A DNA stretch of 64,000 bases from Macrostomum lignano (lineage: Eukaryota): assembly GCA_002269645.1 (NCBI GenBank), contig NIVC01001079.1, forward strand, positions 1 to 64,000. Reading direction: 5' to 3'. A model generated the notes under the pieces. It did no database searches. It was given only the letters and a program-made list of their open reading frames with translations, and had not been told where the DNA came from. The first letter of the stretch is position 1; every line of letters begins with the position of its first letter. This document shows positions 17,401 through 42,629 of this stretch, piece by piece. A program made the translations under genes and the position numbers.

Positions 17401-20400
17401 CACTATAGGCAGCAATTTCTAAGAACCAAATAAAACTCGGATTAAATTCAAGTACATTAATTCAGATATCTCGCATTTTATTTGTTAGAATGATTAGCCC
17501 GCTAATACCAAAACTTGCGCCTGGCGCGCCTATATACATAAATTTTTTTGGCTAGACTAATAGACTAATGCTATATGCTACTAAAATGTGTTATTCGAAA
17601 GTTTTACCGACGTACTTTCATATTTCTATCTATTCGGCTACCCCCCCCCCAGCGTGCAAAGCTCGGAAAGCCTGAACTGTCGGCAGGTGATCGCACGAAT
17701 TCGCGACTTCTACATGGCTCCCGTAATTCGATTCGTGTACAATACGGTGAGGACCGAGAAATTGCTTGCCATGCTACTCACTAGCACAGTTGTTAGTAGT
17801 GTAGCTCAGATAGGAAACATGTAAATTTCAGAGATTATTTTTAAGGTAACGCTTTGAGTGTTTAAATATTGTCATAAGCTCATTCATGGCTTCACAGTTT
17901 CGAGTTTAGAATGTTAAAGTTAATTGAGCTTAAAGCTTTTGAAGATTGGAGCTTAGATTTTGAGGCTTGGAGCTTAGATTTTGAGGCTTGGAGCTTAGAT
18001 TTTGAGGCTTGGAGCTTAGATTTTGAGGCTTGGAGCTTAGATTTTGAGGCTTGGAGCTTAGATTTTGATGCTTAGAGCTTAGCTTTTGAGGCTTGGAGCT
18101 TAGATTTTGAGGCTTGGAGCTTAGCTTTTGAGGCTTGGAGCTTAGCTTTTGAGGCTTGGAGCTTAGATTTAGAGGCTTGGAGCTTAGATTTTGAGGCTTG
18201 GAGCTTAGATTTAGAGGCTTGGAGCTTAGATTTTGAGGCTTGGAGCTTAGATTTTGAAGATTCGAGCTTAGATTTTGATGATTCGAGCTTAGATTTTAAA
18301 GATTCGAGCTTAGATTTGGATTATTCGAGCTTAGATTTGATGATTCGAGCTTAGATTTTGAAGATTCGAGCTTAGATTTCGATTATTCAAGCTTAGATTT
18401 TGAAGATTCGAGCTTAGATTTCGATTATTCGAGCTTAGATTTTGAAGATTCGAGCTTAGATTTTGAAGATTCGAGCTTATATTTTGAAGATTCGAGCTTA
18501 TATTTTGAAGATTCGAGCTTAGATTTTGAAGATTCGAGCTTAGATTTTGAAGATTCGAGATTGCATTTTGATGATTCGAGCTTCCACCCCCTTGCAGATC
18601 TCCTACGTGGCATTTCTAGTCATCTTCAGCTACATGCTGCTGTACGAGCTCACTCACGCTATTAAACCTCTGGAGTACGTGGTGATCGGCTGGATGGTCA
18701 CCCTGCTTCTAGAGGAAATCAAGCAGGTGAGGCATTGCTTGATTATAATTTCTTGAAAAAAAATTGATCACATCCATGAGAAAACAAAGAAGAATTAAAT
18801 CGTTAATTTTTGTCACACCTTCATTTTTCGCCTCTTTTTCAGATATTAACAGTACGTCAGAACCCTTCCAACAGCGCTGTGTCCCGCCTTTTATAGCACC
18901 CCTCCCAGCGACTCTATATTACGCACACTACTATTATTAGTATGATGCAAGAATAATCATTTTTAGTTTTCTCTTTTTTTCCGTTTTCGTTGAATTGAGT
19001 TTCTGATCTGGTTAAAGCAGTTTTCCTATTCGGTGATAGAGATTCGCACTCATGCTACTTATTAGTAACTATAGTACGCGCACAGTTTTGACTCTTGAAA
19101 CAGCTAGGCGTGCTTCTTTTAGAGGCAATTAGAAGTTACAATTATTCGTCTAACTATTAGTCTCTGGAATTTAGTTTAATGCGACTATATCGCTTCCCGT
19201 ATTCGTCACACAGTTAGAGACTTAGCAATCTAAAGTTGTCGTTGCATCGCTTCCATCATATGATATTGTAATGTTGAGTTTATCAGCAATTATATAAATG
19301 TTACTTGTTTACAGAAATGTACTAATATGTCTGAACATGGATCATACGGATATCAAAGTTGAGGGTACGAATGGGGGGAGAGTTCAGATAAGAAATGATC
19401 GATAATAGGGTGTATGGGAACGCGTGGAAGGATTGGGTGTCGAGATTTGGGTAGGAATTGAGGAAGAGAGAAAGAATTAAGAAACGAACGATAATAGGGG
19501 GTGTGGAAAGGCGTGGAAGGGGTGGGTGTCGAGAATGGGGTAGGAATTGAGAAAGAGAGAGAATGAACGAGCGATCATAGAGTGTGTGGAAAGGCGTGGA
19601 AGGGGTGGGTGTCGAGATTGGGGTAGGAATTGAGAAAGAGAGAGAATGAACGAGCGATAATAGGGGGTGTGGAAAGGCGTGGTAGGGGTGGGTGTCGAGA
19701 CTGGGGTAGGAATTGAGAAAGAGAGAGAATGAACGAGCGATAATAGGGGGGTGTGGAAACGCGTGGTAGGGGTGGGTGTCGAGATTGGGGTAGGAATTGA
19801 GAAAGAGAGAGAATGAACGAGCGATAATAAGGGGGTGTGGAAAGGCGTGGAAGGGGTGGGTGTCGAGAATGGGGTAGGAATTGAGAAAGAGAGAGAATGA
19901 ACGAGCGATAATAGGGGGTGTGGAAAGGTGTGGAAAGGGTGGGTGTCGAAGGAATGGAGACTGAGATCAGATAAGGAACGATTGTCATCGGGTGTATAAT
20001 ACACTGTAGCGCCCAAATTTTGAAAATATAATTATGACGGAACTTGCTTAACCACACATACACAAGTTAGCTAATCCCAACAACCAATTATTCAAAAAGA
20101 CGCGATGTACTTCCCTTGGTTAGCTTCATAGTTTTCCAAAAGTGCGTTTGCATGCAAGTATCAAAGATTAATCATAAACTGGGTGTTGTATCCTGTCTGT
20201 TTATTTCGATTATTACGCCTAGATGTTGCTAAATGAGTCTGTATCTCCAGATTAGAAATGCCTGCTCGTTATCATTGCGCAAAGGAAATTGTATGCAAAA
20301 ACATGTTGTTGCTGATGTTTATGAAAGTCCCAGCTGGATTATACGGGCTTATTAGTGAAAGCCCACTTCGCATTGTTATGATACAACTAGTATCCAGGAA

Positions 20401-23400
20401 ATTTCGTTGCTATCACCAATTTTTTTAAGATTGCTGGAGTTTCCCGTTGCTGTAAATGCATATAGAGAGATTTCTGTTGCTATAGAAACATTTCAAAAAA
20501 TCTTCGTGGTAATGAAAATAGTTATAGAGATTGCCTCTCTAATATATATAAAAGTATCTAGAAGATACCCATTGCTAGGGCAATTATTTTTTTAAATATG
20601 AGCGTATAAATTGCTATGGAAGTATCTAGGGAAATCCCTAGTTGCTATGAAAGTATCTAGGGAAATCCTGGTTGCTATGGAAGTATCTAGGGAAATCCTG
20701 GTTGCTATGGAAGTATCTAGGGAAATCCTAGTTGCTATGGAAGTATCTAGGGAAATCCCTAGTTGCTATGGAAGTATCTGGGAAAATCCTAGTTGCTATG
20801 GAAGTATCTAGGGAAATCCTAGTTGCTATGGAAGTATCTAGGAAAATCCTAGTTGCTATGGCCAACCACAGTTGCTAGGGGAGATACTTAAAGCAGAAAT
20901 ACTTCACTCCCAAAGTAAACCACCCCCAATCAAAAACGCAGGCCACAATGTCCGGCATCAGCTTCTCAACGTACATCTCGGACAGCTGGAACAAGCTGGA
21001 CTGCATAGCTGTCGGCCTGTTCACTCTGGGCTTCATCTTGCGCATGATCTCCCTGATAAGCGACGTCCAATCAGACGAGCCCGGCTATGACGTCATTCTG
21101 ACTAGCGAGTTCTTCATCATAGCGAGAATCTGCTACGCTTTCAGCTTGTTCGCTTACTACATCAGGCTGATGTACATCTTCAGCTTCCACATCGCCCTGG
21201 GGCCCAAGCTGATCATGATTGGCAAGATGGTCATCAACGATCTGGTGCCGTTCATGGTCATCCTGTTGGTCTTTGTCCTGGGCTACGGCGTGGCGGCCCA
21301 GTCCATCGCCTACCCAACGGGTCTCTACACCCCGGAGATCGATTACAACAAAACTTTTCCGCCAAGGATGAGCCAAATGGAAGTGTTGGTCAACTTTTTG
21401 ACCAAATCCTATTTTCAAATGTTTGGCGAATTTTCGTTGGAGACGGTCCAGGCTAGGGGTGAGTTCCTTTGAAACTTTGAATTCTATAATCAAAATCAGC
21501 CAATCATTAAGCAGTCAGAGTCAACCAATCAGCTTCAACCGATCAGAATCAGCCAATCAAAACCAGCTAATTATAATTAACCAATAGGAATTTACCAATC
21601 AGAATGTACCAATCGCAATGGACCACTTAGAAACAATAGATTGGAACCAACCAATCAGAATCGATTGATCGGAACCAACCAATCAGAACTAATAGATCGT
21701 AACCAACCAATCAGAATCAATAGATGGGAACAACCAGTCAGAATCGATTAATCGGAACCAACCAATCAGAATCAATAATGGATCGGAACCAACCAATCAG
21801 AATCGATCGAGTTGAACCAACCAATCAAAATCCATCGATCGGAAGCAACCAATCAGAATCGGTCAATTAGCATTGACTAATAGGAGTTCCAAATGTACTT
21901 ATACAGAACCGACCAATCAGAGCTGACTAATTAAACCACTGCCTTATAATCTGAGATTAAACCAAATTCCAGATGACGGATGCAAGAATGACGGCCAGTG
22001 CCCTCACTGGACGGCCACCTGGCTGGTTCCCGTGATGCTGGGAGTGTATGTCCTGCTAACCAACATCCTCATGTTCAACCTGCTGATTGCCATGTTCTCC
22101 AGCACCTATGAGCTCATCAACCAGTTCTCGGCGTTGCACTGGAACTACCAGCGGTACAGCATGATCAAGGAGTACATCGAACGGTCGCCATTGGCGCCAC
22201 CTTTGATCTTCATCTGGCACGCGTACCAGCTGGGTTTCTACATCCAGCTGCGCTACAACGGCCTCAGGCGGTCGGACCTGTACGACCCGCTGAAAATCAA
22301 GTACATCGACAACGTGAAGAAAGAGCGCGAGCTCATCAAGTGGGAGCACATGAAGGCCATGGACTACTTGAGAAATGGCCAGGAGGCTCAACAGAAAAGT
22401 CGGGGCGGTCGAGGCGATTCAAAGTCGATCATCGTCAGAACCTCGGGACCGCAGCCGGCCGCTGGAGGCGGTCAGTCGATGTTTCCCAGTGCTGCGATGG
22501 ACATGGCCAAGCAGATGACGGATGCCACCAGTGGCATCGGCATGGAGCTGGAGAAGAAGTTCAAGGTGCAATTTCCGTGTCTGACAGAATGGGATTTCCC
22601 TGTCTGACAGGCGGGATTTCCGTGTCTGAAAGGCGGAATTTCGGTGTCTGACAGGCGGGATTACCGTGTCTGACAGGCGGGATTTCCGTGTCTGACAGAA
22701 TGGGATTTCCCTGTCTGACAGGAGGGATTTCGGTGTCTGACAGGCGGGATTTCCGTGTCTGACAGGAGGAATTTCGGTGTCTGACAGGCGGGATTTTCGT
22801 GTCTGACAGGCGGGATTGCCTTGTCTGAAAGGCGGAATTTCGGTGTCTGACAGGCGGGATTACCGTGTCTGACAGGCGGTATTTCCGTGTCTGACAGAAT
22901 GGGATTTCCCTGTCTGACAGGAGGGATTTCCGTGTCTGTATCTAACAGCTCAGTTGTGTATCTAACAGCCCAGTTGTGTATCTAACAGCTTAGCTGTGTA
23001 TCTAACAGCTCAGTTGTGTATCTAACAGCCCAGTTGTGTATTTAACAGCCCAGTTGTGTAACCAACAGTCGTGTTCCTTGTCTCCCCCAGGGTGTCGACA
23101 CTCAGTTAAACAAACTCGGTGCGGATTTGGACGGTCGGGTCGGCGAGCTGTCTACAGCAGTGCAGGGCGTCTCCCAGCTGCTGGCGTCAGTGCAGGAGAC
23201 TCAGCGACAGATTCTCGAAAAGTTGGGTGAGCGGCCCACGGAGCCCATTCCTGCTGTGGACCCGCAGCTCGAGTCGCGAGTACGCAGTGTGGTGCTGGAG
23301 ATGTACCAGGCGCCGCCGGCCTGGTTTGAGGAGGCGGCCAGACAGGCTGCATCAGCGGCTCTGCAGGTGAGAGGAGCGGCGAAGATTTTTCACATCTTTC

Positions 23401-26400
23401 CACATCTTTCCATGTAATTCCACATTTTTCCAAATATTTCCACATCTTTCCACGTCTTTCCATATCTTTCTACATCTTTCCATAGCTTTCCACATATTTC
23501 CACATCTTTCCACGTCTTTCCACATCTTTCCACATATTTCTATGTTTTTCCACTTTTTTACCACATTTTCCACATCTTTCCATATCGTTCTACATCTTTT
23601 CATATCTTTCCACGTCTTTCCACATCTTTCCACATCATCTTTCCACGTCTTTCCACATATTTCCACATATTTCCCACATCTTTCCACGTCTTTCCATATC
23701 TTTCCACATCTTTCCACATCTTTCCATCTATTTCCACGTATTTCAACGTCATTAAACGAATTCCCACACACTTTCACCGTCAAGACCACGCCGGTGTCGG
23801 TGCGGGAGCTCGGATCCCCGGTGCTGGAGCGGCTTCGCCCGGTTCAAGCGCCGCCGCCGAAGCCGCCGACGCCACCGCCTCCCCCGCCGGAGGAGCCGCC
23901 GAGCCCGGAGGAGGAGAGCAGCAGCTCCGAAAGCGACGACGACGACCGGACGACGGTGCGGCCGCAGGTGGACGATCCGACAACCGGCCGGATCATCCAG
24001 TACTTGACTTCTGATCACCGTCTGTGGCGCTACGCTCCCTTCAACTTTGAGCAGTACCCCGGCATGCGGATGAACGTGCCGCCCGACCGCATTCCCTGGG
24101 AGGTGGGTGGCGCTGGCTGGGTGGCTTCAATTTTGGTAGCGCCAATGGGGATGGCGCCGTTTCAGGTGGCGCCGGTGGGGGTGGCGCCGATGGGGTGGCG
24201 CCGATAGAGATGGCGCCGATGGGGATGGCGCCGATGAGGATGGCGCCGATGGGGTGGCGCCGATGGGATTGCGCCGATGGGGATGGCGCTGATGGGGATG
24301 GCGCCGATGGGGATGGCGCCGATGGGGATGGCGCCGATGGGGATGGCGCCGATGGGGATGGCGCCGATGGGGATGGCGCCGATGGGGATGGCGCCGATGG
24401 GGATGGCGCCGATGGGGATGGCGCCGATGGGGATGGCGCCGATGGGGATGGCGCCGATGGGGATGGCGCCGATGGGGATGGCGCCGATGGGGTTGGCGCC
24501 GATGGGGATGGCGCCGATGGGGATGGCGCCGATGGGGATGGCGCCGATGGGGATGGCTCCGATTCTGGTGGCGCCGACGGGGTGGCGTTGATGGGGTGAT
24601 GTTTGATGGAGGTGGCGCCGATGGGGTGGCGCCGATGGGGACGGCGCCGATGGAATGTCGCCGATAGGGTGGCGTTTTATGGAGGTGGCGCCGATGAGGT
24701 GGCGTTTTATGGAGGTGGCGCCGATCGGTGTGGGGCCGGTGGGGGTGGCGCCGATGGAGATGGTGGCGCCGATGGAGATGGCGCTGGTGGGGTGGCGTCA
24801 ATGGGGTGGGGCCGATTGGGGTGGCGCCGATGGGGGTGGCGCTGATGGGGGTGGCGCCAACAGTGGCGCCAATGAGGCTGGCGCCAATAGAATTTACACG
24901 GCCAACGATCATCTCCGCTCCGCTCCAACCGCAGATCGAATATCGGGAATATTTTGCATTCGACGCATCAGACGAAGTGCTGGTCTACCCGGGACCGGAC
25001 GCTCACGACAACTCGTCTGTGTGAGTTCGTCTGCAGATTCTTGTAGCGAGATATTGTTCTTAAAATTTTTCACACAATATTCTATTATAAATACTTGATA
25101 GTTTCAATCACGACTAATGATAGTACACCGGCGCATAATTATCGATCACACAAGCCCTTAATTATTGATAACACCAATCCTTAATTATCGATAATACCAG
25201 CCCTTAAATATCGATAACGGCAAACCCTTAATTATTGATAACACCAATCCTTAATTATCGATAACACCAGCCCTTAATTATCGATGACACCAGCCCATAA
25301 TTATCGATAACACCAGCCCTTAATTATCGATAACACTAGCCCTTAATTATCGATAACACTAGCCCTTAATTATCGATAACACCAGCCCTTAATTATCGAT
25401 AACACTAGCCCTTAATTATCGATGACACCAGCCCTTAATTATCGATGACACCAGCCCTTTATTATCGATAACACCAATCCTTAATCATCGATTTCGGCAA
25501 ACCCTTAACTATTGATGACACCAGCCCTTAACAGTAGGAATACCAAGCCATTTTTCCGCCCGTCGAACTACCAAGGGGGGGGGAAAAATTTCCCCCCCCC
25601 CTGACAAATTTTTTTGCTGCGCCGGAACGGAGCAACGCAGACACACAAAATTCAAGAACACGGGCTAACTTTTTGTTGCGCACCTTCTCAAACAAGAATC
25701 AAGTCGCCAGCCCTCCGGACCGTCGAGATATTCGACGATTCTGCCAGAAGGTCGGATTTTTCCCATAAGCGCTAGTGTATTCAGTACACCCCTGTGCGCC
25801 AATCAGCACTGCGCCTCAGTGCAGCCTTGCCAAGTCTCCAAATTTCATCAGCACGTCGACCAAATGTGTCTGCATCAGCTCTGACTTCGTTGGTTACTGG
25901 CCTTCACCGAGACGGAGCTTCTAGACCTTCAACAGGTGGCACCAGGTGACTATGAACACCTTGATGCGAATTTCTCCAGTTTCACCGATCAAGCCTCGAC
26001 AGTAGGCAAGCCTCAACTGCCAGACACCCTCAGCTAGTCTCCTGAGCATTCCGTCATCATCCCGACACCGTCGGCTCCTTCAACAGGTGGCATCAGGTGA
26101 CTATGGACGTCCTTTTGCAACTATGTCAGGTCTTTCTTATCAAGCTTCAATAATGGGCAAACCTCAACCGACGGACATTGTCAGCTAGTCTCTCGAGCAT
26201 TCCGTCATCATCCCGACGCCGTCGGCTCCTTCAACAGATTACACCAGCTGACTATGGACATCCTGATAAGAATTTCTCTAGTTTTGCCGATCAAGCCTCG
26301 ATAGTGGGCAAAAATCAACTGCTGGACATCCTCAGCTAGTCAGTCAAGCATTCAGCCATCACCCCGACGCCGTCGGCACCTTCAACAGGTGGCACCAGGG

Positions 26401-29400
26401 GAGTAAGGACACCTGAGCGTGATTTTTCATCATGCTCTTAACATTTCTGAATCATTATAAAATGAAAAAACGGATTGAATTTACTAGCTTCTTATAAGCA
26501 AAACCCTTTCTGCATAAAAATTGGGTTCAATATTATAGTTGAATAAACTAAACAGCTTTTCGAATAAAATATGTATGTAGCTCGTATGCATAAAAGTATG
26601 CGTAATAATAATATAATATACAGCAACATGAGTTCAAGCTTAACTATAGCAATGTCCGTGCTTTAAAAATTTTGAGAGCTTCAGAAATGTTAAGAGCATG
26701 ATGAAAAATCACGCTCAGGTGTCCTTACTCCCCTGGTGCCACCTGTTGAAGGAGCCGACGGCGTCGGGATGATGACGGAAGGCTTGAGAGACTAGCTGAG
26801 AATGTCCAGCAGTTGATTTTTGCCCATTGTCGAGGCTTGATCGGCGAAACTAGAGAAATCCGCATCAGGGTGTCCTTACTCCCCTGGTGCCACCTGTTGA
26901 AGATGCCGACGGCGTCGGGGTGATGGCTAAATGCTTAGGAGACTAGCTGAGGGTGTCTGGCAGTTGAGGCTTGCCTACTGTCGAGGCTTGATCGGCGAAA
27001 CTAGAGAAATTCGCATCAAGGTGTTCATAGTCACCTGGTGCCACCTGTTGAAGGTCTAGAAGCTCCGTCTCGGTGAAGGCCAGTAACCAACGAAGTCAGA
27101 GCTGATGCAGACACATTTGGTCGACGTGCTGATGAAATTTGGAGACTTGGCAAGGCTGCACTGAGGCGCAGTGCTGATTGGCGCACAGGGGTGTACTGAA
27201 TACACTAGCGCTTATGGGAAAAATCCGACCTTCTGGCAGAATCGTCGAATATCTCGACGGTCCGGAGGGCTGGCGACTTGATTCTTGTTTGAGAAGGTGC
27301 GCAACAAAAAGTTAGCCCGTGTTCTTGAATTTTGTGTGTCTGCGTTGCTCCGTTCCGGCGCAGCAAAAAAATTTGTCAGGGGGGGGGAAATTTTCCCCCC
27401 CCCCCTTGGTAGTTCTACTGTTAATTATCTACAAAATCAACCCAAGAATCGACTATTTACACTTCACTCCAACTTATCCAATACAATAGACTCAAAATAC
27501 CAACAACTCAAGCTAAAAGATTGTTCCAAATTTTTATACCTATTAAATGACAGCACAGATTCCATTATCGATGCTACAGACATTAGCCTCTTTTAGTTGG
27601 AGAAAAACTTTGAAAATTAGTTATCGCTCAATTACGCAATTTTCTCGCATCACACTACTATCAGCGGCACAAATTGAATCTGCAATCCGCAGGTCGGTCC
27701 ACTCGCTGCCATTCAACCAATACGACAGCGCGCACAAGCTCCGTCGCCAGAGCATGATGGGTCGCTACCGGCTAGACTCGAACTCCGGAGCACCGCTCAA
27801 CCCGATGGGCCGGACAGGGCTGAAAGGCAAAGGCCTGCTGCCCAGGTGGGGCCCCAACAACGCTGCCGTGGTGGTCATGACCCGCTGGAACCGGGCGCCA
27901 TCTGGGGCTGTCATCCACCGGCTGGGCAAGCCGATCCTGCAGGTGGTGTCGCTGTTCCGCCACAAACAGTTCTGCCTGCCCTGGGTGAGTGGACTGGGAC
28001 GGGGACGGTGGGGGTGTCTAGGAAGGTCCTTGTACCCTCACATCCATGAGCAATGCTGGGGCACGCACTCATACAAGGTGTACAGCAGCACCTTTTTTAC
28101 TTTCTAATCGTCAGGCATTGTACACACAGTCAGTCAGGAATTATACTTTTAGCCCTGGAGCACAGATACTAGAATAACTAAATAGGCCACTCAGCACATT
28201 TGCGTGTAATCTACTTTCAATTCAGTAGTAAGTTTAACACTACTGAATTGGGTTTGTATTTTTAAAGCCAAGGCTCATTTATTGCCTCTTACCTAATTAA
28301 ACCCTCCAACCGCGCCTTTCCACCCAAACCTCTACCCCCGCCCGCCCCAATTTTATTGCCTTTCTCGGAATTCCAGCCTAAAGTGGCCATGTACATTTCA
28401 GTGGACTGGCTAGATGTACATTATTGCTGAACCAATTAGCAAGTTGTTTATGCGCCTGCAAGCTTGGGCTTCTAAACTTATCAAAGTCATTTTTGCTGTT
28501 TTTTTTATAAAATAGCTTATGTATTCTTCTTTGCTACTGAACTGAAAGTAGAAAGCTGTTTTACTAAGTATATATGCCTGTTTTACTAAGTTATTTTAGT
28601 ATCTGTGGTCGTGGAGCAGGGTCAGATGGGTAACATTAAAGGTCACCTTGAAGGTCACCAAATTTTAGTCGGCCTTGGCAATCAATCAGCCAATCATAAT
28701 TTAACCTGCCAATCAAACTCCGCACCCGCAGTACCTCACGGATCACCAGTCGCACTGCGACTACGACCAGTGCGTGGCCCAGTTTCTCAAAGTCTTCGTC
28801 AGTCGGCGATTGAAGCAGCTGATGCAGCATAGGGGCGCTCGCCAGGAGATCACGGCAGTTCAGAAGGGAAGAGCGGAACAGGTACGAATTCGTTGTTGGT
28901 TCCTTGGGGCCACAGGCTGCGGACAAAAAATAAACATTTTCGAGTTATAACAAAACGGATAAATTTGACCGCGCTTTTGTAGGCAATTCGGCATTCGGAA
29001 ACTGATTTGGTATGAATGAAGAATTCATAAATCGCGAATAAAACTTTTTAGTTGGAAATGATAGTACTTTTAAAATAAGTTTTTACTATTCCTTAAATTT
29101 TATTCCGTTGAATACGTTCTGCCACCCTATCAAGTGGTTCTTATGTTTCTGTTTACCTGAATTTTAGTTTTTTTTGTACAAAAATAATATAAATAATAAT
29201 CCTAAATAGGGAATCCAGAATCCGATATGGGGAATCCCGAATCCAAATAGGGAATCCCAAATCCTAAATGGGGAATCCCGAATACGAACTTGGAAATACC
29301 GAACCAGAGATTGGGAATCCTGAACCCGAAATGAGGAATTCAGAATCCGATATGCGGAATCCCGAATCCGACATGGGGAATCCCGAATCCGACATGGGGA

Positions 29401-31732
29401 ATCCCGAATCCGATATGCGGAATCCCGAATCCGATATGTGAAATCCCGAATCCGATATGCGAAATCCCGAATCCGATATGCGACATCCCGAATCCGATAT
29501 GCGGAATCCCGAATCCGATACGGAGAATCGCGAATCCGATATGCGGAATCCCGAATCCGATACGGAGAATCGCGAATCCGATATGGGGAATCCTGAATCC
29601 GAAATGGGGAATCCCGAATCCGAAATGGGGAATCCCGAATCCAAACGAGGGAATCCCGAATCCAAACCAGGGAATCAACATCCCAGGTTAAAGTATTATT
29701 TTTTGGAATCCCTGTTGCTTTCTTAGAAATGCCAATACCTCACCTTAACCCTCTTTTCTTTGCATCATTTTTCTGTTTTTAAAATAATTCCTGTCCTAGT
29801 ATTCGCTGCTAATTTTTTCTATCAATGTGTCGGCGATAAAAATTTGTTATTATCTCGGGCATTTGACACGACTTGGTGCATAAACAAATTTCAGATATTC
29901 AAAGGCTACCTGGATGACCATCTAAATTCGGACAATGCCTGGATTGAGGCGGTGGTCATCAATATTCACGAATCTGAGGGCTGGAAATTCTCTGACGCTA
30001 TGCTCAAGGTGAGCTCTGGGGCGCTACCGATTAAGCTACGATAATAGTTACTGGTGATTGGATGGCTTGCCATCCCACATCCAGGTGTAGGGTGTAATAA
30101 AATGGGTTGCCAGGCCTCACACCAGCAAGTCGACGGCCTTTTATGGAGTGCCATCCCCCACCAAAAGAAGTGTCATCCCACACTAATGGGTCATCCCACA
30201 CTAATGGGTCATCCCACACTAGAAAGTGCCATCCCACACACCAAGAAGTGTCATCCCACACTAGAAAGTGTCATCCCACACACCAAGAAGTGTCATCCCA
30301 CACTAGAAAGTGTCATCCCACACTAATGGGTCATCCCACACTAATGGGTCATCCCACACTAGAAAGTGCCATCCCACACACCAAGAAGTGTCATCCCACA
30401 CTAGAAAGTGTCATCCCACACACCAAGAAGTGTCATCCCACACTAGAAAGTGCCATCCCACACTAGGAAGTGCCATCCCACACTACGAAGTGCCATCCCA
30501 CACTAGGAAGTGCCATCCCACACTACGAAGTGCCATCCCACACTAGGAAGTGCCATCACACACACCAAAAAGTGTCATCCTATACACCAAGAAGTGTCAC
30601 CCCCACACCAAGAAGTGTCATCCCACACACCAAGAAGTGTCATCCCCCACACCAAGAAGTGCCATCCCACACACCAAGAATTGTCATCCCACACACCAAG
30701 AAGTGCCATCCCACACACCAAGAAGTGTCATCCCACACACCAAGAAGTGTCATCCCACACACCAGGAAGTGCCATCTCACACACCAGGAAGTGCCATCTC
30801 ACACACCAAGAAGTGCCATCCCACACACCAAGAAGTGTCATCCCACACACCAGGAAGTGTCATCCCACACACCAAGAAGTGTCATCCCACACACCAAGAA
30901 GTGTCATCCCACACACCAGGAAGTGCCATCTCACACACCAGGAAGTGCCATCTCACACACCAAGAAGTGCCATCCCACACACCAAGAAGTGTCATCCAAC
31001 ACTACGAAGTGCCATCCCACACTAGGAAGTGCCATCCCACACTACGAAGTGCCATCCCACACTAGGAAGTGCCATCACACACACCAAAAAGTGTCATCCT
31101 ATACACCAAGAAGTGTCACCCCCACACCAAGAAGTGTCATCCCACACACCAAGAAGTGTCATCCCACACACCAAGAAGTGTCATCCCCCACACCAAGAAG
31201 TGCCATCCCACACACCAAGAATTGTCATCCCACACACCAGGAAGTGTCATCCCACACACCAAGAAGTGCCATCCCACACTAGGAAGTGCCATCACACACA
31301 CCAAAAAGTGTCATCCTATACACCAAGAAGTGTCACCCCCACACCAAGAAGTGTCATCCCACACACCAAGAAGTGTCATCCCACACACCAAGAAGTGTCA
31401 TCCCCCACACCAAGAAGTGCCATCCCACACACCAAGAATTGTCATCCCACACACCAGGAAGTGTCATCCCACACACCAAGAAGTGTCATCCCACACACCA
31501 AGAAGTGTCATCCCCCACACCAAGAAGTGTCATCCCACACACCAAGAATTGTCATCCCCCACACCAAGAAGTGCCATAAGTGTCAAAATACCCACCCAAC
31601 GACCAGGTATTCGCGGAGGCGGACTGCGACGAGCAGGTGAAGTGGATGGAGGTGGCCTACAGCACGGCACTTCGGTCCAGCCACTGCGAACTCTTGAAAA
31701 CCGTGGCAGGCAATCACAATGCCTATTTTTGA
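2273..31732 (+). CDS. TRPM2: TRPM2-like cation channel with C-terminal NUDT9-H domain (5'-partial, ~21 exons, ~1487 codons in window)
   Basis: Exons 2273-2429, 2881-3099, 3969-4061, 5350-5454, 8410-8541, 9987-10241, 11223-11255, 11758-11867, 12447-13044, 15990-16052, 17653-17746, 18598-18726, 20942-21458, 21973-22565, 23091-23366, 23785-24102, 24935-25020, 27693-27984, 28732-28881, 29895-30008, 31607-31732. All have AG/GT borders and compatible phases, apart from a 1-nt gap at ~12591. TRPM motifs: LVGDFYQPLY, ELLIWSLL, FYMAPVIRF, EEIKQ, SWNKLD, YFQMFGEF, NLLIAMFS, TRP box WNYQRY. NUDT9-H motifs: PLNPMGRTGLKGKGLLPRWGPN, GYLDDHLNSDNAWIE. Confidence 0.9.
2500..2806. repeat. (GAGAG)n pentamer microsatellite
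   Basis: Directly visible. Confidence 0.95.
2881..3099 (+). CDS. Putative TRPM insert exon, phase 1-1 (219 nt)
   Basis: ctcag/gtaag borders, open frame LVQTAQTGYLPAYFFTKSG..., GC-rich. Confidence 0.7.
3969..4061 (+). CDS. Putative TRPM insert exon, phase 1-1 (93 nt)
   Basis: aag/gtattg borders, open frame VHTMKRDAIAAHHISSESSVTFSDGIRFIDE. Confidence 0.55.
5350..5454 (+). CDS. Putative TRPM insert exon, phase 1-1 (105 nt)
   Basis: cacag/gtgaac borders, DDDTSDSNARGYENPIMES... Confidence 0.6.
5577..7490. repeat. ~21-25-bp minisatellite (TAGTGTCACCTGTTAGACAGGAGA), 1.9 kb
   Basis: About 80 units with recurring variant units. Confidence 0.95.
8410..8541 (+). CDS. Putative TRPM insert exon, phase 1-1 (132 nt)
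   Basis: Weak aag acceptor, strong gtaag donor, GC-rich open frame. Confidence 0.5.
8670..9230. repeat. ~110-bp tandem repeat arranged as an alternating ~219-bp dimer
   Basis: Palindrome TTGAACGTTCAA or variants at 8686, 8793, 8905, 9011, 9124, 9211. Confidence 0.85.
9987..10241 (+). CDS. Putative TRPM insert exon, phase 1-1 (255 nt, poly-Gly)
   Basis: gacag/gtatac borders, open frame with LRRRRSSLEFMEILN and a Gly run. Confidence 0.7.
11223..11255 (+). CDS. Putative TRPM microexon, phase 1-1 (33 nt)
   Basis: Pyrimidine tract then tag, gtacag donor, ADLQRQLVEAE. Confidence 0.45.
11758..11867 (+). CDS. TRPM2: TRPM exon (MHR4, ELLIWSLLVGKLQMAELFW)
   Basis: ctaat branch site, ttgcag/gtggg borders; TRPM motif. 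Confidence 0.88.
12086..12421. mobile_element. Palindromic MITE, ~336 bp
   Basis: GGGCCTGTCAACTTAAGCTCATAAAGTGG... pairs with ...CCACTTTATGAGCTTGAGTTGACAGGCCC; arms pair almost to the centre. Confidence 0.8.
12447..13044 (+). CDS. TRPM2: TRPM exon (MHR4/pre-S1) with 1-nt frameshift and polyQ
   Basis: EPIAAALL...LDQCY in one frame, EDERRAQFLINREL...HPCCQDFL in the next; gtaagt donor. Confidence 0.85.
13100..13250. repeat. ~22-bp minisatellite (GATTAGGGCGATTCTCGTGATG)
   Basis: About 6 units. Confidence 0.8.
13814..15588. repeat. Highly homogeneous 15-bp minisatellite (ATAGACTGTGTCAGA), 1.8 kb
   Basis: More than 110 near-identical units. Confidence 0.97.
15990..16052 (+). CDS. Putative small TRPM exon, phase 2-2
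   Basis: ttctcag/gtggg borders; bridges the phase-2 ends of the flanking exons (QSDNQLGAQFDGASLQSSED). Confidence 0.5.
   Translation, partial: SVRQPAGSAIRWRQPSELGG
16720..16792 (+). tRNA. tRNA-Arg(CCT): tRNA-Arg(CCT), inside a TRPM intron
   Basis: 73-nt cloverleaf: GCCCGTG/CACGGGT acceptor stem, A box TGGCCTAATGG, anticodon loop CTCCTAA, T loop GGTTCGAGTCC, T-run terminator at ~16805. Confidence 0.95.
16899..16944 (+). repeat. Dispersed ~45-bp SINE-like fragment, copy A
   Basis: cagcggcccaggctcgattccaagtgcagtcacattaat, with a near-identical inverted copy at 44688-44732; B-box-like core. Confidence 0.6.
17159..17334. mobile_element. Small MITE-like element with imperfect TIRs
   Basis: ggtgggttgctttcacaaacgcaaaatttcacaaccgc versus the reverse complement of gcggttatgaagtttcgcgtttatgaaacccacc. 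Confidence 0.45.
17653..17746 (+). CDS. TRPM2: TRPM exon (pre-S1, RIRDFYMAPVIRFVYNT)
   Basis: poly-C ag acceptor, gtgag donor; TRPM FY.AP..F motif. Confidence 0.88.
17945..18582. repeat. ~21-bp minisatellite (GAGCTTAGATTTTGA core) with a 5'-3' variant gradient
   Basis: ggcttggag units are replaced by agattcgag units. Confidence 0.92.
18598..18726 (+). CDS. TRPM2: TRPM exon (S1-S2)
   Basis: ISYVAFLVIFSYMLL...WMVTLLLEEIKQ; ttgcag/gtgag borders. Confidence 0.9.
19400..19950. repeat. ~87-bp purine/G-rich tandem repeat
   Basis: About 6 units cgataataggggtgtggaaaggcg...gaatgaacgag. Confidence 0.9.
20600..20862. repeat. 30-bp minisatellite (GTTGCTATGGAAGTATCTAGGGAAATCCTA)
   Basis: About 8 units. 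Confidence 0.9.
20942..21458 (+). CDS. TRPM2: TRPM exon (S3-S5 and pore helix)
   Basis: SWNKLD, LGPKLIMIGKM, YFQMFGEF. Confidence 0.92.
21490..21940. repeat. Degenerate CCAATCAG-rich minisatellite
   Basis: Many AACCAATCAGAATC units. Confidence 0.8.
21973..22565 (+). CDS. TRPM2: TRPM exon (S6, TRP box)
   Basis: CP..WLVP, NILMFNLLIAMFSSTY, WNYQRY, PPL motif. Confidence 0.92.
22570..22935. repeat. 21-bp minisatellite (GTGTCTGACAGGCGGGATTTC)
   Basis: Starts just after the 22566 donor. Confidence 0.9.
22936..23068. repeat. 20-bp minisatellite (TGTATCTAACAGCTCAGTTG)
   Basis: About 6 units just upstream of the 23090 acceptor. Confidence 0.85.
23091..23366 (+). CDS. TRPM2: TRPM exon (coiled coil)
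   Basis: cccccag/gtgag borders; heptad pattern LDGRVGELSTAVQGVSQLL. Confidence 0.8.
23385..23745. repeat. ~11-bp repeat (CACATCTTTC)
   Basis: Fills the intron. Confidence 0.9.
23785..24102 (+). CDS. TRPM2: TRPM exon (Pro-rich linker, start of NUDT9-H)
   Basis: PPPKPPTPPPPPPEE...YPGMRMNVPPDRIPWE, resembling NUDT9 VP..KV.W. Confidence 0.82.
24140..24890. repeat. 15-bp G-rich minisatellite (GATGGGGATGGCGCC)
   Basis: Homogeneous core at ~24280-24560 with degenerate flanks. Confidence 0.92.
24935..25020 (+). CDS. TRPM2: TRPM exon (NUDT9-H cap)
   Basis: ccgcag/gtgagt borders; phase 2 end matches the next exon. Confidence 0.75.
25135..25530. repeat. ~24-bp minisatellite (CCCTTAATTATCGATAACACCAG)
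   Basis: About 15 units. Confidence 0.9.
25565..27415. mobile_element. Foldback-type non-autonomous DNA transposon (1.85-kb palindrome)
   Basis: Arms ~25565-26450 and ~26680-27415 are inverted copies; ends TA|CCAAGGGG...CCCCTTGG|TA; ~150-bp internal subrepeats (4 left, 3 right); no ORF. Confidence 0.88.
27693..27984 (+). CDS. TRPM2: TRPM exon (NUDT9-H: FNQYD...PLNPMGRTGLKGKGLLPRWGPN)
   Basis: Close match to the NUDT9/TRPM2 P-loop-like motif; gtgagt donor. Confidence 0.92.
28732..28881 (+). CDS. TRPM2: TRPM exon (degenerate Nudix-box region)
   Basis: ccgcag/gtacga borders, phase 0-0, YLTDHQSHCDYDQCVAQFLKVFVSRRLKQLM. Confidence 0.75.
29205..29675. repeat. 21-bp minisatellite (GAATCCCGAATCCGATATGCG)
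   Basis: About 22 units. Confidence 0.9.
29895..30008 (+). CDS. TRPM2: TRPM exon (NUDT9-H: IFKGYLDDHLNSDNAWIE)
   Basis: Matches NUDT9 YKGYVDDPRNTDNAWME. Confidence 0.9.
30135..31578. repeat. ~20-22-bp minisatellite (AAGAAGTGTCATCCCACACACC) with higher-order blocks
   Basis: The block starting gtgccatcacacacaccaaaaagtg recurs at ~30550, ~31070 and ~31285. Confidence 0.93.
31607..31732 (+). CDS. TRPM2: TRPM terminal exon
   Basis: VKWMEV...LRSSHCELLKTVAGNHNAYF*, resembling the NUDT9-H C-terminus (LYASH..L..VA). Confidence 0.88.
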   Translation, partial: VFAEADCDEQVKWMEVAYSTALRSSHCELLKTVAGNHNAYF

Positions 31733-32064
31733 GGCCTCAAAATCCAGCTGTATGAGTAGATAATCCTATACGGATATCTGATATCTGATTTTATATCCTA
31801 TTGTTAGTAGTATATGTGCTGATGCAGAGGTTAAATTTGCCTGAAAATATTCAACTTTGCACATCTACATGTGATTCCTGCCGTAAAGCCTCGTGTTACA
31901 TGCAGACTTGGTTGTTACTGCTGCTGTTGCTGCTGCGAGGGACACTTCGTGTTCTTGTATTCTGTTGCCATTAAGCAAGTGGATTTTAAGTTTACATTGT
32001 CACTTCAGCTCTAATTGGTCATCTATAGCTAGACTCTCTAGTGCCACTTTCCTGTGCTTGACAC

Positions 32065-34255
32065 GTCTAAGTGTCTGTCTTAGTGTCTGTCTTAGTGTCT
32101 GCCTTAGTGTCTGTCTTAGTGTCTGTCTTAGTGCCTGTCTTGGTGTCTACCTTAGTGTCTGTCTTAGTGTCTGTCTTAGTGTCTGTCTTAGTGTCTGCCT
32201 TAGTGTCTGTCTCAGTGTCTGCCCAGTGTCTGCCTTAGTGTCTGCCTTAGTGTCTGTCTTAGTGTCTGTCTTAGTGCCTGTCTTGGTGTCTACCTTAGTG
32301 TCTGTCTTAGTGTCTGCCTTAGTGTCTGTCTCAGTGTCTGTCTTAGTGTCTGTCTTAGTGCCTGTCTTGGTGTCTACCTTAGTGTCTGCCTTAGTGTCTG
32401 TCTGTCTCTTTTAGTGTCTGTCTCAGTGTCTGTCTCAGTGTCTGCCCAGTGTCTGTCCTAGTGTCTGCCTTAGTGTCTGTCTCAGTGTCTGTCTTAGTGT
32501 CTGTCTTAGTGTCTGCCTTAGTGTCTGTCTTAGTGTCTGTCTTAGTGCCTGTCTTGGTGTCTACCTTAGTGCCTGTCTGTCTCTTTTAGTGTCTGTCTCT
32601 TTTAGTGTCTGTCTCAGTGTCTGTCTCAGTGTCTGCCCAGTGTCTGCCTTAGTGTCTGGCTTAGTGTCTGTCTCAGTGTCTGTCTTAGTGTCTGTCTTAG
32701 TGTCTGTCTTAGTGTCTGTCTTAGTGTCTGTCTTAGTGCCTGTCTTGGTGTCTACCTTAGTGTCTGCCTTAGTGTCTGTCTGTCTCTTTTAGTGTCTGTC
32801 TCAGTGTCTGTCTCAGTGTCTGCCCAGTGTCTGTCCTAGTGTCTGCCTTAGTGTCTGTCTCAGTGTCTGTCTTAGTGTCTGTCTTAGTGTCTGTCTTAGT
32901 GTCTGTCTTAGTGTCTGTCTTAGTGCCTGTCTTGGTGTCTACCTTAGTGCCTGTCTGTCTCTTTTAGTGTCTGTCTCTTTTAGTGTCTGTCTCAGTGTCT
33001 GTCTCAGTGTCTGCCCAGTGTCTGCCTTAGTGTCTGGCTTAGTGTCTGTCTCAGTGTCTGTCTTAGTGTCTGTCTTAGTGTCTGTCTTAGTGTCTGTCTT
33101 AGTGTCTGTCTTAGTGTCTGCCTTAGTGTCTGTCTCAGTGTCTGTCTTAGTGTCTGTCTTAGTGCCTGTCTTGGTGTCTACCTTAGTGTCTTAGTGTCTG
33201 TCTGTCTCTTTTAGTGTCTGTCTCAGTGTCTGTCTCAGTGTCTGCCCAGTGTCTGTCCTAGTGTCTGCCTTAGTGTCTGTCTCAGTGTCTGTCTTAGTGT
33301 CTGTCTTAGTGTCTGCCTTAGTGTCTGTCTTAGTGTCTGTCTTAGTGCCTGTCTTGGTGTCTACCTTAGTGTCTGTCTGTCTCTTTTAGTGTCTGTCTCT
33401 TTTAGTGTCTGTCTCTTTTAGTGTCTGTCTCAGTGTCTGTCTCAGTGTCTGCCCAGTGTCTGCCTTAGTGTCTGCCTTAGTGTCTGTCTTAGTGTCTGTC
33501 TTAGTGTCTGTCTTAGTGTCTGTCTTAGTGTCTGTCTTAGTGTCTGTCTTAGTGCCTGTCTTGGTGTCTACCTTAGTGTCTGTCTGTCTCTTTTAGTGTC
33601 TGTCTCTTTTAGTGTCTGTCTCTTTTAGTGTCTGTCTCAGTGTCTGTCTCAGTGTCTGCCCAGTGTCTGCCTTAGTGTCTGCCTTAGTGTCTGTCTTAGT
33701 GTCTGTCTTAGTGTCTGTCTTAGTGTCTGTCTTAGTGTCTGTCTTAGTGTCTGTCTTAGTGTCTGTCTTAGTGCCTGTCTTGGTGTCTACCTTAGTGTCT
33801 GTCTGTCTCTTTTAGTGTCTGTCTCTTTTAGTGTCTGTCTCTTTTAGTGTCTGTCTCAGTGTCTGTCTCAGTGTCTGCCCAGTGTCTGCCTTAGTGTCTG
33901 CCTTAGTGTCTGTCTTAGTGTCTGTCTTAGTGTCTGTCTTAGTGTCTGTCTTAGTGTCTGTCTTAGTGTCTGTCTTAGTGCCTGTCTTGGTGTCTACCTT
34001 AGTGTCTGTCTGTCTCTTTTAGTGTCTGTCTCTTTTAGTGTCTGTCTCTTTTAGTGTCTGTCTCTTTTAGTGTCTGTCTCAGTGTCTGTCTTAGTGTCTG
34101 TCTTAGTGTCTGTCTTAGTGTCTGTCTTAGTGGCTGTCTTAGTGTCTGTCTTAGTGTCTGTCTTAGTGGCTGTCTTAGTGTCTGTCTTAGTGTCTGTCTT
34201 AGTGGCTGTCTTAGTGTCTGTCTCGGTGTGTGCCTTAGATAATGTCTTCCTCGTA

Positions 34256-35981: not shown

Positions 35982-37487
35982 TCAGCAGATGGTCTCGCAC
36001 ACGTTGCTGTCAACCAGATCTTGGTGCACCAGAACGGAGACCATCCTGTTCAAGTCAGCATCTTCGCCGACCCCGCCGCTGCCGCTCGGCTCTACAATGG
36101 TGTGTTTGCCACGGCCGCAGATGGCGCTGTTGTTCCTGAAACGGACCATCTCGTCGGCGGTTCCGACCGCGCCAGCTTGAAGTTGTCGGCGAAGACGCCG
36201 CAGGCGCATTCGCTGCTGGCGACGCTGAATCGGGCCGCCGTAGGAGAGCGACGGACTGGCGCCGGCGGTCTCGTCAGCCGAGCCGCCGTCGTTGTTGGCT
36301 GCGACGGCGGCAGCAGCGTCGGCAGCGTTGGCTGCGGCGCTGATGCGGGCGGCAACTGCGGGACAAAAAGTTTTCAAGAAACAGCGTCGAAAAGCGCGAT
36401 TAAAGCCGACGTAGAGAAAGAAGTTGAGCGCAGAGTTCAGGCTGAGCATCAAGTCGCTGATCTCGCGGACGCCCCGGCGAAAATTGCTGGCCGTCTCGAC
36501 GTAGCCCCAGCCAAGCAGGGACAGCAGGGCGTCGGGCAGGCTGAACACGATGGCGCAGAGGATCACCACGGCCAGCATGAGGGTCACGCGGTTGCGGGTG
36601 GCCAGCCGCTTGTTGGCCCGAGTGGCTCTGACGGCCATGGTGATTCGCACGTTCAGGCAGAACAAAATCAGTAGCGGCAGAGGCGACCGCACGAGGCTCT
36701 GGGCTTTGGCATAGATATTGGAATACGGAAAATTGGTCCAAAGTTTGCTTGGCATCGGCCACGGTGTGCAGTTAGTGCTAGTAGAATTGCTTTCGGGCCA
36801 TGTATAATTGTCACGCAGAGAGCGCGTGATTTTGCTGCTAAAAATAGCATCTTCTGTAGGGATCGATGAACTGACGTCACTGTTAGGTCGCGCGGAGCTA
36901 TAAATAGCAACATCCGAAGTGACATCATGGCTAGTGATGTTTTTAAAAATAGCATCATCGGGTGCCGTTGCCGGCTGTTTGCAAACGGTCTCGTAGCGCA
37001 GCAAGTAGGGCCAGGTGATGATCAGCACCAGCAGGAAGGTGACCAGAGACGCTTTCCGGGCTTTGGCTACGGTGAGCGAGTAGCGACTCCAGCCCGGTTG
37101 AGTCACCATCAGGCAGCGTTCGACGGCCACGGCCACGGTGAGCCAGGCAGCGCAGCCTGAGGCGTACTGCGACAAGAAGAATGAGTAGGGATACAGCCAG
37201 GCAAATAGACGGTGGCCGGGCATCAGGCTGGCCGGGAAGTAGAGAAAATCGTTGCCAAGTTTGAGCAGGTCCGCCCCGGCTAGGCCGGTCAGGTAGGCGT
37301 TGGTGCTGCTGCAGCGGAGGGCCCGGCGGCTGAACACCGCGACGCACAGGACGCTGCCAACGCAGCCGAGAATGGACACAAAGGGACAGAGCAGGACGCC
37401 GGTGACAAACTGGGCTCGCTGGAAGAATTCCTCGGCAGAGGCGTCAGAGGCGTCGGCCTCGGAATCACTCAGACTCTGCAGGGACAT
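35982..37487 (-). CDS. Intronless class A (rhodopsin-type) peptide GPCR, FMRFamide-receptor-like
   Basis: Seven hydrophobic helices; STNAYLTGLAGADLL (TM2), AVERC (DRY variant), FSLP (TM6), LNSALNFFLY (TM7), FRRCF (helix 8); first in-frame ATG at 37487. Confidence 0.9.
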   Translation of the reverse strand: MSLQSLSDSEADASDASAEEFFQRAQFVTGVLLCPFVSILGCVGSVLCVAVFSRRALRCSSTNAYLTGLAGADLLKLGNDFLYFPASLMPGHRLFAWLYPYSFFLSQYASGCAAWLTVAVAVERCLMVTQPGWSRYSLTVAKARKASLVTFLLVLIITWPYLLRYETVCKQPATAPDDAIFKNITSHDVTSDVAIYSSARPNSDVSSSIPTEDAIFSSKITRSLRDNYTWPESNSTSTNCTPWPMPSKLWTNFPYSNIYAKAQSLVRSPLPLLILFCLNVRITMAVRATRANKRLATRNRVTLMLAVVILCAIVFSLPDALLSLLGWGYVETASNFRRGVREISDLMLSLNSALNFFLYVGFNRAFRRCFLKTFCPAVAARISAAANAADAAAAVAANNDGGSADETAGASPSLSYGGPIQRRQQRMRLRRLRRQLQAGAVGTADEMVRFRNNSAICGRGKHTIVEPSGSGGVGEDADLNRMVSVLVHQDLVDSNVCETIC

Positions 37488-37774
37488 GCCGCAGTTTGGG
37501 GACAATCGAGATGAACAAGGTGTAGCAAATTTGGCTTATTATTAGCACCTGAGGCGGGCTGCTCGAGGACTCAAAGCGGAACCTCATTCGACTGAGGAAG
37601 AATTAATTTCCTTACCCAATGGGAGCAATGCAGTTGAAAATCTTTCAAAAATGCATGAAGCCATGCGTGAATTAATAACAGAAACTCGAAAGTGGCACTC
37701 AGACTTTCCTAGCGGTTTTTTATAGCTTTTCCATCGAGTATTCGGTTAGTGTTGCATGGACATACCCTCAGGGT

Positions 37775-39454: not shown

Positions 39455-39497
<43 letters not shown>

Positions 39498-39500
39498 TTT
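38855..39500. repeat. (TCTG)n-based compound satellite
   Basis: Directly visible. Confidence 0.93.
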
Positions 39501-42552: not shown

Positions 42553-42629
42553 GGCAATGCTGTCGATAAACAATCGCAGAATAATGTATGGAGCAGTTTT
42601 ATTTCAGGTTGAAATGTATTAAAACAGAA

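Follow-up and report, generated by a model that had tools for sequence, protein, structure and literature searches.

Replacement of the Nudix box in the NUDT9-H domain of a putative TRPM_PZQ-clade channel gene of Macrostomum lignano

The 64,000-nucleotide stretch of Macrostomum lignano DNA analysed here (assembly GCA_002269645.1, contig NIVC01001079.1, positions 1 to 64,000, forward strand; hereafter the window) contains roughly the 3′ two-thirds of one TRPM channel gene, whose C-terminal NUDT9-homology (NUDT9-H) domain is the main subject of this analysis. The gene lies on the plus strand at 2270-31732, where the exons for MHR3/4, the transmembrane segments S1-S6, the TRP helix, a coiled coil and the NUDT9-H domain follow each other colinearly (Table 1). 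A tblastn search of the window with the 1,954-residue M. lignano paralog P0166 revealed exons colinear with residues 509-1954 of that protein, and the N-terminal MHR1/2 exons lie beyond the left (upstream) edge of the window. The last four coding exons (named A, B, C and D) form one open frame and are separated by three GT-AG introns of phase 0. Joined in frame with the exon ending at 24102 and the cap exon at 24935-25020, which is also present in the paralog locus L001 (NIVC01000175.1), they encode a C-terminal region of 307 residues without a stop codon.

The product of exons A-D is a NUDT9-H domain of 227 amino acids, which matches its listed relatives over nearly the whole length. In phmmer searches, the NUDT9-H domain of Nematostella TRPM2 (6co7) was found with an E-value of 2.3e-34 and human NUDT9 (1q33) with 1.1e-31 (query residues 6-226), followed by TRPM2 of Salpingoeca rosetta (8sr7, 6.7e-29) and human TRPM2 (about 6e-21). 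The full-length homology over cap and core that characterizes the NUDT9 / NUDT9-H family is present in the window protein. An AlphaFold2 model, built on a shallow alignment, gives the core (residues 135-307) predicted local distance difference test (pLDDT) values of mostly 78-94. A strand (178-182) and a loop precede a helix (189-208) that occupies the position of the Nudix helix, and the Nudix α/β/α fold with its loop-helix-loop is recognizable. The top Foldseek matches are the NUDT9-H domain of S. rosetta TRPM2 (E 8e-11) and NUDT9 (2e-10), with human TRPM2 also found and the bacterial protein AraR among the weaker matches.

The sequence of the gene places it in the TRPM_PZQ clade, the praziquantel target family. 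A word-indexed protein search returned fragmentary flatworm models only, with no full-length TRPM_PZQ, and the relatives were taken from an exhaustive representative search. The NUDT9H-bearing flatworm TRPMs form three clades, which are matched by the 'nudix subclade' of three schistosome genes in a 2024 review. In a neighbour-joining (NJ) tree of the NUDT9-H domains, calculated with a custom distance routine and 100 bootstraps, the flatworm domains are monophyletic (100/100), clades A and B group together (89/100), and four Macrostomum sequences, the window included, join Schistosoma rodhaini P0022 in the TRPM_PZQ clade (81/100). P0022, a member of clade A, carries all five numbered landmarks of Sm.TRPM_PZQ (N1388, R1514, T1518, D1677 and Y1678), all shifted by the same 766 positions, and these include the TRP-helix Asp that is diagnostic of TRPM_PZQ. 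At the variable positions of the drug pocket, the window gene has N in S1 (…RFVYNT, exon 17666-17776), I in S4-S5 (YIRLMYI) and E in the TRP helix (MIKEY). The same 'N-I-E' pocket was published for Ml.TRPM_PZQ, which has been cloned and responds to praziquantel with a half-maximal effective concentration of 18 µM (PMC9910428). The paralog P0166 also has N-I-E, so this configuration does not single out the cloned paralog; the published TRP-helix residue of Ml.TRPM_PZQ is E1495, whereas the equivalent Glu of the full-length P0166 is residue 1297.

At least four M. lignano paralogs of this gene were identified. The 84-residue UniRef entry A0A1I8FX47 (P0024) is 100% identical to exons C and D, and the next-best matches are M. 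lignano paralogs with identities of 79, 66 and 60%. P0024 (window 29880-31729), the sole public protein identical to the locus, opens with an intron read-through (INKFQ) before exons C and D and is labelled 'Terpene_synth_C domain-containing protein'. The TRPM paralog in the window thus appears essentially unannotated or misannotated in public data. Three further C-terminal fragments of flatworm TRPMs (P0002, P0003 and P0007) are named 'ADP-ribose pyrophosphatase, mitochondrial' in NCBI/UniRef; as they carry the degenerate motif described below or skip it, this enzyme name is probably wrong.

The former Nudix box and the ADP-ribose pocket

The counterpart of the NUDT9 segment PGGMVDPGE…REFGEE in the window gene is PWYLTDHQSHCDYDQCVAQFLKVFVSRR. 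In pairwise alignments the Nudix-box segment reads CLPWYLTDHQSHCDYDQCVAQFLKVFVSRRL, and the NUDT9 loop grgllgrwgpnhaad corresponds to GKGLLPRWGPNNAAV. Motifs were mapped on a multiple alignment of 36 sequences, in which KVFVSR takes the place of REFGEE, W-Y that of the two Gly residues and Ser that of the Glu in GX5E; five residues are inserted before the Nudix helix of the window protein. Set against the Nudix box GX5EX7REUXEEXGU, the window sequence (Y-LTDHQ-S…K-V-F-V-S-R) keeps none of the four acidic residues and neither of the two Gly. Upstream of it, the last residues encoded by exon A are CLPW (27973-27984), in place of the (A/G)IPG of canonical proteins. The Pfam NUDIX profile (PF00293; gathering cut-off 21.1 bits) detected nothing at E up to 10 in the window protein, the schistosome TRPM_PZQ domain or a vertebrate TRPM2 domain, whereas the two controls, the canonical TRPM2 NUDT9-H domain of a brachiopod and a NUDT9-like protein, scored 25.4 and 38.2 bits, respectively. 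A six-frame regular-expression scan of the 64-kb window found no canonical Nudix box, and low-stringency tblastn of canonical Nudix-box segments against the whole window gave no credible alternative Nudix exon. One segment at 17096-17308 (+), with a tblastn E-value of 0.016 to a NUDT9-H fragment (…ALSAPGGLL…KIFRGY), contains no REFxEE and was judged a chance match; it sits within an inverted repeat, upstream of transmembrane exons.

The replacement extends beyond this gene. All three clades of flatworm NUDT9H-TRPMs, which cover trematodes, cestodes, a monogenean and Macrostomum, have in common the 5-residue insertion and the motif LPW[YF]L[TV]xH-x3-C-x4-C, and clades A and B also have [ST]RR at the former catalytic EE. 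Across ten flatworm domains from the three clades, P177, W178, H183, C187, C192, R289, S291 and H292 are invariant, and the residues between W178, H183, C187 and C192 vary freely. The His and the two Cys are encoded in exon B of the window gene at 28744-28746, 28756-28758 and 28771-28773. The motif reads PWYLTDHTSKCDFDEC in the schistosome protein and was found in more species, including Hymenolepis, Trichobilharzia and S. mattheei. Just past the degenerate box, two models of the L001 paralog (P0166 and P0018) differ by nine residues at the exon B/C junction (AEQ-ALRNSMSDV-IFKGY vs AEQ-IFKGY), which suggests alternative splice-site use or a model error.

Contacts to ADP-ribose have changed as well. 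The pocket residues of human TRPM2 (hTRPM2) were taken from PMC6759353 and PMC5299621 and mapped on the same alignment. The window protein keeps three (D1431, L1484 and H1488) of the 11 listed residues, which are H1346, T1347, Y1349, L1379, G1389, S1391, E1409, D1431, R1433, L1484 and H1488, to which Y1485 was added. Among the exchanged positions, Leu stands at R1433 and S1391, Arg at Y1485, Trp at G1389 and Val at Y1349 (an Asp position in invertebrates); the equivalent of H1346 is Asn in the window and His in most other flatworm sequences. The adenine-stacking Tyr and the retained His (hTRPM2 Y1485 and H1488) are both encoded by exon D. These exchanges follow flatworm-wide patterns. DDPRNTDNAW has become DD[HQ]LN[AS]D.AW or DDT[VI]NTD, and the α-phosphate Arg (R1433) is now L/V/I; PL[YF]ASH has become [LM]R[ST]SH, with Arg at the adenine-stacking Y1485; and LLGRWGPNHAAD has become LLP[RH]WGPN…[VIL], with a hydrophobic residue at the P-loop Asp.

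The coding sequence is constrained. Between the window and L001, dS (synonymous divergence) is about 1.2-2.2 and dN (nonsynonymous divergence) is 0.07-0.28 over all exons, and the ratio is well below 1 throughout, about 0.12 overall. Exon B, with a dN of 0.28, a dS of about 2.2 and an approximate dN/dS of about 0.13, is the fastest of five exons (proportion of nonsynonymous differences, pN, 0.23 vs 0.07-0.17 in its neighbours). It is nevertheless clearly constrained, and the replacement motif is under purifying selection.

Among other animals, the TRPM2 of the brachiopod Lingula, also a spiralian, retains a canonical RMEFAEE, and canonical boxes prevail in the remaining invertebrate matches. 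Degenerate boxes were also found in channel-sized proteins of Lymnaea, Lottia, another gastropod, Holothuria, Trichinella and Salpingoeca macrocollata (a choanoflagellate paralog). The TRPM2-like or NUDT9-H proteins with degenerate boxes are P0098, P0129, P0094, P0062/P0192, P0113/P0183, P0141 and P0148, and the Trichinella …PRWGPN loop has Pro, as in flatworms. Judging from these sequences, repeated loss of the Nudix box seems common in invertebrates, which lowers the surprise of the flatworm case; that case stands out by its conserved replacement motif and by a channel that is a drug target. The simplest history would be one replacement in an early flatworm, before the split of Macrostomorpha from the parasite lineage and before the three-fold gene duplication. 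Because it is common to all three clades, the loss would predate the Macrostomum-Neodermata split, and the substitutions indicate that it is independent of the EF-to-IL change of vertebrates. The NJ tree places the flatworms beside vertebrate and holothurian sequences; this placement is not read as a sign of a shared loss, given the long degenerate branches and the different substitution patterns.

An earlier note on this DNA had described an invertebrate TRPM2 with an erased Nudix box at 27693-31732. Its location and motif reading are reproduced by the coordinates, exons and alignments. Its view that the NUDT9-H scaffold is retained agrees with the phmmer matches to 6co7 and 1q33, the AlphaFold2 core and Foldseek, and its view that the box is gone agrees with the 36-sequence alignment and the missing PF00293 match. 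The altered substrate loop it pointed out is likewise seen (GKGLLPRWGPNNAAV vs GRGLLGRWGPNHAAD in NUDT9). It had further proposed a loss independent of vertebrates and more extreme, which fits the sequences: vertebrates keep GG…GE…R..…E, whereas flatworms keep none of these and have the insertion, and Lingula is canonical. As in TRPM2, the gene encodes a TRPM channel body and NUDT9-H together. Four elements of the note need correction. The gene is a member of the flatworm TRPM_PZQ clade rather than an anonymous invertebrate TRPM2; the loss is not an event of this gene or species, being common to all three flatworm NUDT9H-TRPM clades; 'erased' is misleading for a box whose place has been taken by a motif in which W, H and two C are invariant and which is under purifying selection; and the premise of uniformly canonical invertebrate TRPM2s does not survive the degenerate boxes of gastropods, a holothurian, Trichinella and a choanoflagellate paralog.

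Proposed function of the domain

We consider it very likely that the NUDT9-H domain of Macrostomum TRPM_PZQ is a non-catalytic pseudo-enzyme, which retains the fold and whose Nudix box was anciently replaced and selectively maintained. In an early flatworm ancestor, before the three 'nudix-subclade' TRPM paralogs diverged, the Mg2+-binding Nudix box would have been replaced by the 5-residue insertion and a new conserved motif, LPW[YF]L..H-x3-C-x4-C…[ST]RR. ADP-ribose contacts would have been exchanged simultaneously (R1433 to L/V/I, Y1485 to R, the P-loop Asp to a hydrophobic residue, G1389/S1391 to W/L). The domain would then have been kept by purifying selection as a catalytically dead module, most likely serving for docking or regulation on the cytosolic side of the channel and possibly binding a ligand of a different kind.

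According to a passage of PMC6461439, the NUDT9 mutants RILGEE and REFGKK are each inactive. Loss of ADP-ribose pyrophosphatase (ADPRase) activity therefore appears close to certain, because both halves of REFGEE, both Gly and the upstream Glu are gone, while a change in either half alone abolishes the activity of NUDT9. Loss of canonical ADP-ribose binding is likely because R1433 and Y1485 are replaced. The second ADP-ribose site, in MHR1/2, is altered in the flatworm paralogs: the TGGAKNF loop is shortened, T174 has become F/H/Y, Y295 K/V/Q and R358 G/K, while R302 remains. Since Gly replaces R358 even in certain invertebrate sequences that are canonical in other respects, the alteration of this N-terminal site is at most suggestive. 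Removal of NUDT9H leaves the praziquantel response of Sm.TRPM_PZQ unchanged, and a 2024 review gives the enzymatic capacity and binding properties of NUDT9H in TRPM_PZQ as unknown.

Several points weigh against the pseudo-enzyme interpretation. Inactivity is deduced from the loss of motifs, the gene model of this paralog is known from genomic DNA rather than transcripts, and the MHR1/2 site was read in paralogs, its exons being outside the window. The saturation of dS makes the dN/dS values approximate, and the cap half of the AlphaFold2 model is unreliable (pLDDT <50 for residues 31-134). The very strong conservation of the GRTG..GKGLLPRWGPN loop and the invariance of the His/Cys/Cys hint at a specific task that the cleft still has, and a purely 'structural' label may be too weak.

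Two other explanations concern the gene rather than the biochemistry of its product. It is highly improbable that exon B is a gene-model artefact and that the true transcript skips it or uses an unseen canonical Nudix exon. The phase-0 introns on both sides of the exon would let such a skip or swap preserve the frame, and one public cestode model (Schistocephalus P0002) skips it. However, none of the six frames of the 64-kb window contains a Nudix-box-like coding segment, and the same six-exon structure with identical splice sites recurs at the paralog locus L001, including a 150-nt counterpart of exon B with the same phases that encodes FLTDHFDNCDYDDCVPALLKNFISRR…. The models of Schistosoma, Calicophoron, Echinostoma, Taenia, Hymenolepis and Trichobilharzia are contiguous across the exon A/B junction (PW|[YF]LTDH), and those of the first five genera and Macrostomum read PW[YF]L.DH…C….C without a break, with P0002 as the exception. 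Skipping exon B would also remove the central helix of the fold. The artefact explanation is already largely refuted: the exon at 28732-28881, for which the earlier note asked confirmation, has its match in L001 and is read through in schistosome proteins, and the missed REFxEE exon that would have refuted the note was not found in the window by six-frame scan or tblastn. There is likewise very little to be said for a neutral relic, with the domain decaying or the M. lignano copy being a pseudogene. The presence of at least four paralogs in M. lignano, the somewhat faster change of exon B and the dispensability of NUDT9H for the praziquantel response would fit such a relic, which is contradicted by the data: the reading frame is open in all exons from the counterpart of residue 509 through to the stop and the GT-AG sites are intact, every exon has a dN/dS well below 1, and free-living and parasitic flatworms have the motif in common.

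The remaining alternatives assign the cleft an activity of its own. We regard it as distinctly unlikely that the domain still hydrolyses or binds ADP-ribose, or a related nucleotide, through non-canonical residues. In its favour, the fold is conserved together with D1431, H1488, the Glu of AWIE and the GRTG…WGPN loop, and atypical boxes are functional in some Nudix-fold proteins; on the other side, the box has lost all four acidic residues and both Gly, no flatworm sequence retains the α-phosphate Arg or the adenine-stacking Tyr, the Pfam NUDIX signal is missing, and a change of half the box already inactivates NUDT9 in the passage cited above. A new metal or redox site at the former Mg2+ site, formed by His-x3-Cys-x4-Cys and perhaps H292 or the Cys of FCLPW, is an unlikely but specific alternative, under which the domain might, with equally small probability, be a Zn2+ or oxidation sensor of the channel or part of a pocket for a non-nucleotide ligand. 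It would explain why H183, C187 and C192 are invariant in three flatworm clades with free residues between them, at the metal-binding place of Nudix enzymes, which comprises the loop and the first turn of the helix. It is weakened by the number of invariant candidate ligands, which is three, by the modest model confidence (67) for residues 181-190 and by the possibility that Cys and His are conserved for packing alone.

To our knowledge, praziquantel is the only drug used for schistosomiasis and TRPM_PZQ is its target, and we know of no natural activator of this channel. The sequences argue for a loss of ADP-ribose hydrolysis, and probably of canonical binding too, throughout the flatworm family before parasitism arose, followed by conservation of a different motif. 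The search for the endogenous ligand would be steered from ADP-ribose towards the new His/Cys-containing site. Should the unlikely Zn2+ or redox site prove real, the NUDT9-H domain of the praziquantel target family would sense the endogenous stimulus of the channel. The textbook picture of a single TRPM2 enzyme loss in early vertebrates is corrected, as Nudix-box loss was repeated in invertebrate lineages.

Coordinates, neighbouring genes and repeats

Table 1 Features of the TRPM gene in the window.
Feature	Position	Strand	Evidence and remarks
TRPM channel body (MHR3/4, pre-S1, S1-S6, pore, TRP helix)	2270-22565	+	tblastn to P0166 residues 509-1423; open reading frame (ORF) translations
Channel-body exons	2270-2458, 11757-11867, 12444-12853, 17654-17776, 18601-18726, 20939-21454, 21963-22565	+	tblastn of P0166
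Coiled-coil (rib/pole helix) exon, TRP helix to NUDT9-H	23088-23333	+	tblastn to P0166 1423-1512; ORF 23046-23414
Exon starting the NUDT9-H region, …HRLWRYAPFNFEQYPGMRMNVPPDRIPWE	23938-24102	+	donor GTGGGT after 24102; 5′ limit not defined
Small NUDT9-H cap exon, IEYREYFAFDASDEVLVYPGPDAHDNSS + 2 nt	24935-25020	+	acceptor AG, donor GTGAGT, phase 2 into exon A
Exon A, cap/core junction	27693-27984	+	loop GKGLLPRWGPNNAAV at 27826-27870 (NUDT9: GRGLLGRWGPNHAAD)
Exon B, former Nudix box, 150 nt, phase 0/0	28732-28881	+	28732-28809 encode YLTDHQSHCDYDQCVAQFLKVFVSRR
Exon C, IFKGYLDDHLNSDNAWIEAVV…	29895-30008	+	DDHLNSDNAW (29913-29942) in place of DDPRNTDNAW; Arg equivalent to R1433 is Leu
Exon D including TGA stop	31607-31732	+	ALRSSH (31667-31684) in place of PLYA(S/N)H
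Minisatellite in intron B-C, 21 bp x 22 copies, noncoding	29198-29663		repeat analysis
Minisatellite in intron C-D, 22 bp x 63 copies, fills most of the intron	30224-31577		repeat analysis

Long intronic ORFs at 29268-29723 and 30048-31752 were rejected as exons, being translations of the 21- and 22-bp minisatellites. Further minisatellite arrays with periods of about 12-24 bp (13800-15640, 24100-24900, 32065-33000 and beyond, 38800-39660 and 44900-45930) fill introns and intergenic DNA and give rise to numerous long but spurious ORFs on either strand; the one at 24100-24900 has a very high GC content (about 70%).

Beyond the 3′ end of the TRPM gene, a single-exon G-protein-coupled receptor (GPCR) of 507 amino acids and rhodopsin type (Pfam 7tm_1, Srw) is encoded on the minus strand at 35982-37505. 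In two M. lignano models, P0019 and P0172, a similar GPCR is joined to the NUDT9-H C-terminus of a paralog, and the TRPM-GPCR neighbourhood seems to have been duplicated together with the gene. At 40622-42573 (-), a bromodomain ORF (40622-41056) adjoins a Myb/SANT-like, Ala/Gln-rich ORF (41545-42573), and the two are probably exons of one chromatin-reader gene. An ABCF-type gene at 44024-50136 (-) combines two ABC_tran domains and a linker with a Lys/Glu-rich N-terminus and repeat-filled introns. The uninterrupted ORF of 621 amino acids at 53220-55082 (+) contains a protein kinase domain (E 2e-61) and weakly matches the POLO-box, and it is probably a polo-like kinase.

Comparison with known systems

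The closest described systems are Sm.TRPM_PZQ and Ml.TRPM_PZQ (Park 2019, Rohr 2022), which have the architecture of the window gene, with a TRPM body, a coiled coil and a C-terminal NUDT9H. The window gene shares the N/I/E pocket with the Macrostomum channel and the degenerate motif with the schistosome channel. Both the TRPM_PZQ gene family and the fact that it carries NUDT9H are already known. In the literature searched, we found no description of the state of the Nudix box in TRPM_PZQ, where the domain is called 'enzymatic' or of unknown capacity, and no report of ADP-ribose tests on TRPM_PZQ.

The TRPM2 chanzymes of Nematostella and S. rosetta, together with human NUDT9, are the best sequence and structure matches to the window domain. 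They share with it the cap and core fold and the GRTG…WGPN and …TDNAW motifs, and they differ from it by a canonical (A/R)EFxEE and a measured ADPRase activity (PMC6461439), whereas the window protein is without the catalytic residues. The TRPM2 literature describes Nudix boxes as canonical in all invertebrates, with flatworms unmentioned (PMC6461439). Judged by the sequences collected here, this statement is too broad because of the degenerate boxes in gastropods, a sea cucumber, Trichinella and a choanoflagellate.

The NUDT9-H domain of vertebrate TRPM2 resembles the window domain in being NUDT9-derived and attached to a TRPM channel, in the loss of catalysis, which is predicted for the window domain, and in failing the Pfam NUDIX profile. 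However, vertebrate TRPM2 keeps GG, GE, R…E (RILRQE), R1433 and Y1485, and its domain binds ADP-ribose and is used for gating. The flatworm domains have lost all these residues, have gained the 5-residue insertion and the His/Cys/Cys, and are not needed for drug activation. A precedent for a Nudix fold with a degenerate box that serves as a ligand-binding or regulatory module is provided by NrtR (PMC2330246) and Bacteroides AraR, which are unrelated bacterial transcription factors and resemble the window domain in fold only.

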